From contig CM119386.1 in the NCBI GenBank assembly GCA_051294905.1, positions 11,160,001-11,224,000 on the forward strand: a stretch of DNA of 64,000 nt, in the 5' to 3' direction. Each line of letters starts with the position of its first letter. The stretch's first letter is position 1. Below are positions 42,676-45,732 of this stretch, in pieces. This stretch comes from Botryllus schlosseri. Taxonomy: Eukaryota. The position numbers and the translations under genes were made by a program. The notes under the pieces were generated by a model. The model was not told where the DNA came from, did not search any database, and saw only the letters and a list, made by a program, of their open reading frames with translations.

Positions 42676-44585
42676 TTATAGTTCATGCTTGTAATTTGAA
42701 GTTATGTCCTGGTCCGTTCGTTTGCGGGACAGTGATTTGGTAGTCCCAACTTTTGCCATCTTGTTAATTTTGTTCCGTAGACTATCGTCAGCCATCCTTG
42801 TTTCTTTACTGTAGAGGTTACTCTCCAAATGATACTCATCAGACGTTGATGGGTTTAATATAACCTCTTTTTCTATCGCCCACATTAGCAGAAGAGAAGA
42901 TGTTGATGTATGAAATTTCTGAGCCGTTTTTCTTAAGTCAACTGATCCCAGGATTGAATTCTTGGTTGTCTAAAAGGATTGAGAATAATAAATGTCATGT
43001 TTATTTTCTGTTTAGTATGGTATCTATAGAGGCCTATCTGATGATTGATGTAATATTGTCGTAGTGCCAATGTGAAGAGTTGAGACAGTGTCATTAGGTT
43101 AAATAGTGCCATGCTTTCTTGCATATTACATACAATTGATTGCTGGGAACTTACCATTTCTACTCTCATTCTGTGAAATCCAAATATTCCGTAAGCCATG
43201 TATCTGATTCCCAGCTCTTTGCAATAGTGGCGAATCTCTTCATCTGGATGTAACAAATCAAACCAATTTTCAACTACAGAAAGGCCATTTTCCGCCATTG
43301 AATTTATAAGATCTAATTCTGTGGCGTTTTCAATGTTAGAAACCCCGATGGACCGTACCATTCCTCTTGTTTTAAGTGCAGTCAATTCCTTCATTGTGAT
43401 ATGAATTTTCTGAAAATCCTTCTCGTTGTATGGTAATTCTAGTAAAACTAAGTCAATGTAGCTAGAATCAAGTTCCTCCAGAGATTCTATTAAAATTGCT
43501 TCGATTCCACCTTCAACGGCGATTGTGGTCTGATTAATTTTTATTGATATGAAAATTTCATCTCGCTTGGTTTTTGTCTTCTCCATATTATTTCTTATAT
43601 GGTGCTCCAAGGACAGATTGCCAGTTTCGTTTGATTTTACGATGTGAAAAAGTTTATACCCAATCTCCAAAGCTCTACTTATAACCGCTGATTTGTTGTG
43701 TCCAAGACTGTAGGTTCCCAATCCTATTGGTGGTATGAAATATCCGGTGTTTAACGAAAGGCTGTTTGCTTCGTGAGAGAGGGATGTGTTTCTACCCTCA
43801 TTCCTGTCTTGAATGACTGATTTTAGCGTCAATGGGCTGCAATGTATTGTCCTTTTGAGGTTTGCTTTCCAACTCATTTTCACTGCAAGGAATTTACCTA
43901 CTGGTGTAAGTGAACATGAATTGAATCCGTAAGGTATATATATCAATTCTCCTTTCTGAAAAGTGTCCAAACAATGCTCCCTGCTGCTGTGCAGTAGCGC
44001 AACCCGTAACTTTCCTGATATGATTAGTAGGTAACTTGGTCCTTGAATTGTCAATCGTCTGATGTTTTGCTCGTTGGTAAAGTGCAGCGAGTAAGCGACA
44101 CTATTCAAAAAGTCATAGTATAGGTCCCGGCAAGATAATGTTGGGATCGGTGTTGGTATAGAATCTAGCAACATCACTTGTGACATCCCAATATCCTTTT
44201 CAATTGTGAGTGGCTTGTCGGTTTCTTTCATGTCCTTCAATGTGATTGTTGATGGAACCCAATCATCTAGGTAGTTAATTTTTATAACTTTTGCCATTGC
44301 TATGCCATCATTCTGCCAATAATTATAGAGACGCCAATCATTATAGTCATCTGTGAATTTCACTATTTTCTCTCCCATGTAGAAATCTCTTGCAAATTCT
44401 GGTCCACTCATCTGATGCTTGATACTGAATATGCATGTATCTTTTACAGTATTGCAGCTCCCGCCTGACATGAGACCCAATGTATGATAGATAAAAATGC
44501 ATTGGAAGATTTTGGAGTGAACGTACATGTTACTTAGCCTTTCAAAGATGCAGCTCTTCTGCCAAGCTATAGAAACATATGCCAT
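42676..44585 (-). CDS. Cupin/JmjC-like + aldo-keto reductase fusion protein with C-terminal KHEL, 574 aa (555 aa from Met at 44528), 2 exons
   Basis: Exon 44585-43155 (donor GTAAGT), 185-nt intron, exon 42969-42676 (acceptor ccttttAG, phase 0). The splice restores the AKR C-terminal strands (LRKTAQKFHTSTSSLLLMWAIEKEVILNPSTSDEYHLESNL). AKR motifs: IPPIGLGTY, ALEIGYK, SLEELDSSYIDLVLL, GMVRSIGVSN. Cupin-like motifs: GPEFARDF..DWRLYNYW and KGELIYIPYGF. Confidence 0.85.

Positions 44586-45243: not shown

Positions 45244-45732
<489 letters not shown>

Follow-up and report, generated by a model that had tools for sequence, protein, structure and literature searches.

An ascidian protein joining a decayed JmjC domain, a decayed aldo-keto reductase barrel and a KHEL tail: a probable double pseudoenzyme of the endoplasmic reticulum

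What is left for a protein to do when it joins two enzyme folds, has apparently lost the active site of both and ends in a signal for retrieval to the endoplasmic reticulum (ER)? This question is raised by a gene on the minus strand (44528-42676) of a 64,000-nucleotide stretch of Botryllus schlosseri DNA (assembly GCA_051294905.1, contig CM119386.1, positions 11,160,001 to 11,224,000 of the forward strand), hereafter the window, from whose first letter all positions are counted. A first-pass annotation had proposed that the product of this locus, called here the window protein, is an ER-retained double pseudo-enzyme in which a cupin/JmjC-like domain precedes an aldo-keto reductase (AKR) domain. 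The analysis presented below supports this reading, with ER residence and loss of catalysis being predictions from sequence. We consider it probable that the protein is soluble and ER-resident, that it is retrieved through its KHEL tail and that its two former enzyme folds serve as binding or scaffold modules.

The gene is composed of two exons, as established by reading of the DNA and scripted splicing. The coding part of exon 1 (43155-44528, minus strand; residues 1-458 from Met 44528) was delimited from the open reading frame (ORF), its translation, tblastn and end-to-end alignment with two tunicate homologues, P0001 and Styela P0002. It is followed by a phase 0 intron of 185 nt (42970-43154, GTAAGT...TTTTAG, thus of the GT-AG type) and by exon 2 (42676-42969; residues 459-555 and the TAA stop), which carries the end of the AKR domain to about residue 520 and then a basic, poorly conserved tail, as judged from BLASTP, the family alignment and composition. 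As had been noticed in the annotation, the ORF in the program-made list (42933-44585, minus strand) hides the true C-terminus: splicing at 43155/42969 completes the barrel and gives 555 residues from Met 44528, ending in NYKHEL before TAA, and 574 residues from the in-frame Met 44585, which reproduces both predicted products. This junction is supported by homology and by a conserved intron position. Indeed, exon 2 matches residues 469-531 of Styela clava P0002 (BLASTP, E 7e-15), which adjoin the residues aligned with the end of exon 1, so that the homologue is continuous across the junction. Furthermore, the ORF calls of P0001, P0019 and P0020 all stop at this junction, that of P0001 running into the intron at the same residue, and two other tunicate loci, L001 and L002, contain GT-AG introns at the same place or nearby.

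Residues 256-520 of the window protein correspond to an AKR barrel (Pfam PF00248, E 4.5e-23, 82 bits versus a cut-off of 24), the first part of which (residues 256-458; 43155-43763, minus strand) is encoded by exon 1; exon 2 alone gave no Pfam match. AKR structures from the PDB match the protein with a best E of 3e-12 (HMMER), the best including 3o0k, 1vp5, 4q3m and 1mzr. In the AlphaFold (AF2) model of the exon 1 protein, the mean predicted local distance difference test (pLDDT) is 86, the barrel being mostly above 90 with alternating strands and helices. In contrast to this well-preserved fold, shared with AKRs of the 2,5-diketo-D-gluconate reductase and YvgN types ((beta/alpha)8 barrel, PF00248), the active site is profoundly altered. 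According to the family alignment, the catalytic tetrad Asp/Tyr/Lys/His reads His295/Asn300/Lys330/Glu364, in agreement with the degenerate motifs first picked out by eye (GYKLFHIVKSN and DLVLLELP, with only the Lys kept). The tetrad positions likewise hold neither Asp nor Tyr in the HMMER alignment to 3o0k, which departs from the family alignment by a small gap. Regarding the cofactor, the Gln contacting the nicotinamide is replaced by Glu420 and the 2'-phosphate motif IP[KR]S reads NPST, with loss of its basic residue; the GVSN motif is retained as Ser397-Asn398. The window protein further departs from these AKRs in lying behind a JmjC domain and in being predicted to be secretory instead of cytosolic. 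With three of four catalytic residues lost (Asp to His, Tyr to Asn and His to Glu), we infer that the AKR half is non-catalytic.

Two features of this altered site can be described in their own right. His295 (43644-43646, minus strand) and Glu364 (43437-43439, minus strand) form an apparent acid/imidazole swap which is found in both the window protein and P0001, and which may keep the buried Lys330 charge-paired. Asn300 (43629-43631, minus strand) begins an N-x-S/T sequon (NET) that is kept in P0001 (NES); a glycan attached to it might occupy the former active site.

The N-terminal half proved more difficult to assign. No Pfam match was obtained with the N-terminal 270 residues, and a feature-based Atlas search gave nothing beyond a weak lead to cupins in general (score 0.77). 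Similarly, a profile of the three closest N-terminal domains searched against 1.84 billion representatives recovered only five proteins, none of them cnidarian and two already used to build the profile, all five having the same two-domain architecture; a direct hidden Markov model search thus could not bridge this domain to Cupin_8. The bridge was made through full-length matches of P0020 and then hhalign, by which the tunicate N-terminal domains aligned with cnidarian and hemichordate Cupin_8 domains at 98.2% probability (E 5.5e-14, 186 columns). Modeled alone with AF2, the domain of the window protein reached a pLDDT of 83.6 and a predicted template modeling (TM) score of 0.81. With Foldseek, its best PDB matches were JMJD5 structures (TM 0.65-0.67, E 4e-8), and in the Swiss-Prot section of AFDB it matched JMJD8 and JMJD5, JMJD8 giving the best E (2.4e-7, TM 0.59). 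These data place a double-stranded beta-helix of the pseudo-JmjC type, derived from Cupin_8, at residues 31-235 (43824-44438, minus strand), in line with the cupin/JmjC-like half of the initial proposal.

The residues expected of an oxygenase are missing from this domain as well. The positions of the HxD...H iron triad read gap (in the T160 region), Ile and Ser204 in the family alignment, consistent with the earlier remark that the triad is absent and that IYIPYGFNS stands where YIPxxWxH would be expected. The 2-oxoglutarate (2OG)-binding Lys of the SGTK motif is replaced by Leu174, a position variable across all tunicates, and about 35 residues are deleted inside the domain. Alignments and model together indicate that the N-terminal half corresponds to a JmjC domain with a JMJD5-like fold which has decayed, iron triad and 2OG lysine having been lost. 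It differs from the JMJD5/KDM8-type 2OG oxygenases, whose fold it shares, by these losses, by the deletion and by falling below Pfam detection, whereas residue-intact cnidarian members of its own family match JMJD5 structures by sequence at E 2.6e-34. Moreover, JMJD5 is nuclear or cytosolic, while the window protein is AKR-fused and predicted to enter the secretory pathway. Two cysteine residues, Cys133 and Cys230, are invariant in 16/16 family members and missing from the JMJD5 alignment, a pair which fits a lumenal disulfide.

This family was assembled from a search with P0020, followed by a search with the JmjC region of the octocoral proteins and sequence retrieval, and comprises 16 members, seven from tunicates and nine from cnidarians, a hemichordate and other sources. 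The P0020 search led to Ciona savignyi P0022 and to octocoral proteins, the latter aligned over 91% of their length and carrying Pfam Cupin_8 and AKR domains (in Paramuricea P0025, E 1.4e-43 and 6.1e-49, respectively). A single architecture, with a hydrophobic N-terminus, Cupin_8 and AKR, is found in octocorals, hexacorals, the hemichordate Ptychodera flava, several unplaced eukaryotic transcripts and tunicates. The window protein belongs to this family by full-length collinear homology, by its Cys133/Cys230 pair and by monophyly with the tunicates (100/100); in a structure search, the match between its two-domain model and the Actinia protein spanned JmjC and AKR alike (E 2.6e-27). Dendronephthya LOC114518412, the Paramuricea "Prostaglandin F synthase", Actinia LOC116291382 and a Ptychodera flava protein share with it the domain order, the signal peptide and the Cys pair. 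In contrast to the window protein, they keep the JmjC triad and, except for Actinia P0146, the AKR tetrad. The fusion family is uncharacterized, its database entries being unnamed or automatically named, and we found no paper on the JmjC-AKR fusion, on its secretory-pathway form or on an ER-lumenal AKR. This accords with the little-described family of the first-pass annotation.

The distribution of catalytic residues follows the tree. In all nine non-tunicate members, the His/Asp/His triad is present together with the 2OG Lys. The Asp/Tyr/Lys/His tetrad is likewise intact in these members, with the sole exception of Actinia P0146, where Asp replaces Tyr. The iron triad is missing in 7/7 tunicate members. 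Their AKR tetrads are graded: intact in Ciona savignyi, P0020 and P0021; altered from Lys to Arg and from His to Lys in P0019; altered from His to Glu with a displaced Lys in Styela; and read as His/Asn/Lys-or-Arg/Glu in the window protein and P0001. In the maximum-likelihood tree, the tunicates are monophyletic (100/100) on a long stem, and the window protein nests with P0001 (100/99), then with Styela (100/100) and then with P0019 (99/97). Because of this nesting, the decay appears to have proceeded stepwise along one lineage: the loss of the JmjC residues would go back to the tunicate base, with a step-by-step decay of the AKR residues toward Styela and the species of the window. The gene in the window would thus represent the end state of a stepwise decay within an old metazoan family which keeps both residue sets elsewhere.

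The hexacoral and Ptychodera members (P0144, P0145, P0146 and P0150) carry an additional C-terminal ShK-like segment and a PQQ/BamB-type beta-propeller, without KDEL, and P0148 and P0149 (unplaced eukaryotic) combine JmjC and propeller without AKR; the JmjC, AKR and propeller modules seem to travel together. An AFDB entry, A0A1S3J9Q8 (LOC106171369 isoform X2, uncharacterized, 494 aa), matches residues 109-448 of the two-domain model, which takes in the AKR domain and some of the JmjC domain, and could extend the family to another phylum. Finally, P0028 from Ciona intestinalis (LOC100175192, 412 aa) has a hydrophobic N-terminal segment and a family-like AKR domain with intact tetrad, is devoid of JmjC domain and ends in GGEL.

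Targeting to the ER has been predicted from both ends of the window protein. The N-terminus was described at the outset as a weak signal peptide starting from Met 44528, and the hydrophobic segment is indeed real and weak. It covers about residues 1-24 (44457-44528, minus strand), with IFQCIFIYHTLGLM as h-region and an S-G-G-S that fits the -3/-1 rule, and is modeled by AF2 as a helix from residue 2 to 20. Its 10-residue Kyte-Doolittle maximum is 1.63, versus 1.9-3.6 in relatives. Nevertheless, it is homologous by alignment to the clear signal peptide of P0001, and all members with a recorded N-terminus begin with a hydrophobic segment, either a signal peptide or an apparent signal anchor, the latter in P0027, Oculina P0145 and Actinia P0146 (the P0151 record being an N-terminal fragment). 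Orthologs lacking a signal peptide would have contradicted the proposal; the homologues were found to have clear ones. No other segment of the window protein reaches transmembrane-level hydrophobicity.

At the other end, KHEL (42679-42690, minus strand), identified by translation and comparison of family tails, is a KDEL-type ER retrieval motif. K[D/E/H]EL terminates 8/8 two-domain members with a known C-terminus, the window protein included: KDEL in Ciona savignyi, Paramuricea, Dendronephthya and the P0020 locus, KEEL in Styela, P0141 and the P0019 locus, and KHEL in the window protein, the octocoral members thus ending in KDEL or KEEL. For L001:7854-8132 and L002:3260-3643, second exons which the gene caller had left unjoined, GT-AG joining gives ends in KEEL and KDEL. 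The tails ahead of K-x-E-L cannot be aligned across the family, and a protein would end in K-x-E-L by chance with a probability of about 4e-4. The motif is conserved at the end of a sequence that is not; a KHEL without conservation would have spoken against the proposal. In an ER-localization reporter, the -3 position tolerates any residue except Pro (Raykhel et al., 2007; PMC2140024), which puts KHEL within the KxEL set known to work experimentally; no relevant literature was found on KHEL together with the KDEL receptor.

Several observations weigh against the preferred reading. On the catalytic side, much of the barrel persists, as do Lys330 and Ser397-Asn398, and the Asp-to-His and His-to-Glu exchanges resemble a compensating swap, so that cofactor binding or an unusual chemistry may persist. 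On the targeting side, the signal peptide ranks last in the family for hydrophobicity, the tail is basic where those of the relatives are acidic, KHEL falls outside the PROSITE pattern [KRHQSA]-[DENQ]-E-L, and the function of KHEL is known only from a reporter with human receptors (PMC2140024). Lastly, the binding or scaffold role is one that we infer, as is the scaffold, chaperone or sensor role put forward in the annotation.

The first group of observations leads to an alternative in which only the JmjC half is dead and the AKR half is a working enzyme, or a cofactor-dependent sensor, that binds NADP(H) with a rearranged His295/Lys330/Glu364 site. Such a rearrangement is consistent with the retention of Lys330 and GVSN in a barrel of pLDDT above 90, with the reciprocal appearance of the two exchanges and their occurrence in both the window protein and P0001, and with the intermediate states of Styela and P0019, in which Asp and Tyr are kept. 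It is difficult to reconcile with the general-acid Tyr having become, in both the window protein and P0001, an Asn within an N-x-S/T sequon, or with the change of the nicotinamide-contacting Gln to Glu and the disappearance of the basic residue of IP[KR]S. We know of no AKR that works without its catalytic Tyr. An active or cofactor-sensing AKR half hence appears unlikely.

The second group would be explained if the protein does not reside in the ER, either because its N-terminus fails and it stays in the cytosol or because the ascidian KDEL receptor does not recognize KHEL and it is secreted. The weakness of the h-region and the departure from the PROSITE pattern are as expected from this alternative, and the hexacoral and hemichordate relatives, with additional C-terminal domains in place of a KDEL tail, show that non-retained forms exist in the family. 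However, the N-terminal segment is homologous to a clear signal peptide, and the invariant Cys pair has been kept. K-x-E-L stands at the extreme end of an otherwise unconserved tail in every two-domain member with a known C-terminus, and every -3 residue except Pro was functional in the reporter (PMC2140024). A cytosolic or secreted protein is accordingly judged improbable, to the same degree as an active AKR half, and residence in the ER remains the preferred reading.

The loss of both catalytic sites and the weakening of the signal peptide could also denote a gene without remaining function. Several lines of evidence were gathered on this point. The window protein and P0001 have common dead residues while being 1.5 substitutions per site apart in the tree, and both keep long open frames (shuffled coding sequences contain about 38 stops). 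Their two domains are evenly conserved, with 44% and 46% identity, and their terminal branches (0.68 and 0.82) show no acceleration compared with those of tetrad-intact tunicate members (0.85-1.05). In addition, the same divergent UPF0220/TMEM50-type neighbor adjoins P0001 on its contig, a head-to-head synteny common to both loci. Open frames, even conservation, absence of branch acceleration and shared neighbor argue that a non-catalytic function is being maintained, and speak against decay. A decaying relic, in other words an unprocessed pseudogene in the making, is thus very improbable given an open frame of 555 codons with canonical splice sites, and a P0001 counterpart with the same dead residues and an intact frame across that distance.

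In the preferred reading, the locus would be an intact gene with two exons, from an ascidian of styelid type, and its product a soluble secretory-pathway protein of 555 residues composed of a weak cleavable signal peptide, a dead JMJD5-like JmjC domain, a dead AKR barrel and KHEL. It would descend from an old metazoan signal peptide-JmjC-AKR family which has kept both catalytic sets in cnidarians and a hemichordate. After entering the ER, the protein would be retrieved from the Golgi by binding of its KHEL to the KDEL receptor and would act in the ER without catalysis, its old pockets and surfaces being kept for the binding of a ligand or client, or as a scaffold. As stated above, this is the reading we hold to be probable. 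Intact catalytic residues in a structural alignment would have contradicted the proposal; sequence and profile alignments found them missing in both halves.

AKR barrels in roles other than bulk metabolism have precedents in the Kv-beta channel subunits and lens rho-crystallin. Kv-beta subunits, unlike the window protein, keep the tetrad, bind NADPH, are cytosolic and are not fused to a cupin domain. With regard to the JmjC half, the closest precedent is JMJD8, a vertebrate ER-lumenal protein composed of a JmjC domain alone behind a signal peptide, from which ER-lumenal JmjC proteins are so far exclusively known (PMC5684140). JMJD8 gave the best Swiss-Prot AFDB E for the N-domain model, although by TM score JMJD8 and JMJD5 cannot be told apart; it differs from the window protein by having no AKR domain, and a KDEL motif is not mentioned for it (PMC5684140).

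With respect to the start of the gene, an alternative in-frame ATG lies upstream (44583-44585, minus strand; ORF list) and would add 19 residues for a total of 574. It is probably not the start, because the homologues begin at the hydrophobic segment matching Met 44528. Between the two candidate ATGs (44555-44585, minus strand) lies an acceptor-like TTTCTATAG/CTTGG; TTTCTATAG could be an acceptor for ascidian spliced-leader trans-splicing, which would drop the upstream ATG and make Met 44528 the first AUG. A signal-peptide exon located far upstream was considered and rejected: the N-terminus of the window protein aligns with the P0001 signal peptide inside the same ORF, and a divergent UPF0220 gene starts only about 660 bp off. 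This neighbor (45244-45732, plus strand) is an intronless ORF of 162 residues with a Pfam UPF0220 match (TMEM50 family, E 1.6e-44), head to head with the gene, and the two probably share a bidirectional promoter. It was not found on the contigs of P0019 and P0020, whose flanks are short and hence uninformative. No second copy of the gene was found by tblastn and search of the 64-kb window.

JmjC oxygenases and AKRs have each been heavily studied, yet no paper describing their fusion was found. Both folds are known, and the window protein lacks the catalytic residues that define either family; what appears to be new is the fusion family and its series of decay. As a broader and tentative proposal, which we hold as possible and well short of likely, the signal peptide-JmjC-AKR(-KDEL) architecture may be an ancient module of two enzymes, so far undescribed, that belongs to the early secretory pathway of animals and in which a JMJD5-like 2OG hydroxylase would be coupled to an NADPH-dependent carbonyl reductase. 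Vertebrates would have kept at most a JmjC-only remnant, possibly JMJD8, and ascidians would have turned the module stepwise into a non-catalytic ER binding protein. If true, this would be one of the rare documented cases in which a double enzyme can be followed through a half-dead form to a double pseudoenzyme. The natural series runs from proteins with both sites intact (corals and acorn worm), through those with a dead JmjC domain and an intact AKR tetrad (Ciona savignyi and two other tunicates) and those with a partly dead AKR domain (Styela and P0019), to those in which both appear dead (the window protein and P0001). For annotation of genomes, labels such as "Prostaglandin F synthase" and "NADP-dependent oxidoreductase" are unsafe for proteins of this family. 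With this series, the question of what pseudoenzymes keep doing becomes directly testable, and it also points to a hydroxylase/reductase chemistry, as yet unknown, in the ER of invertebrates.

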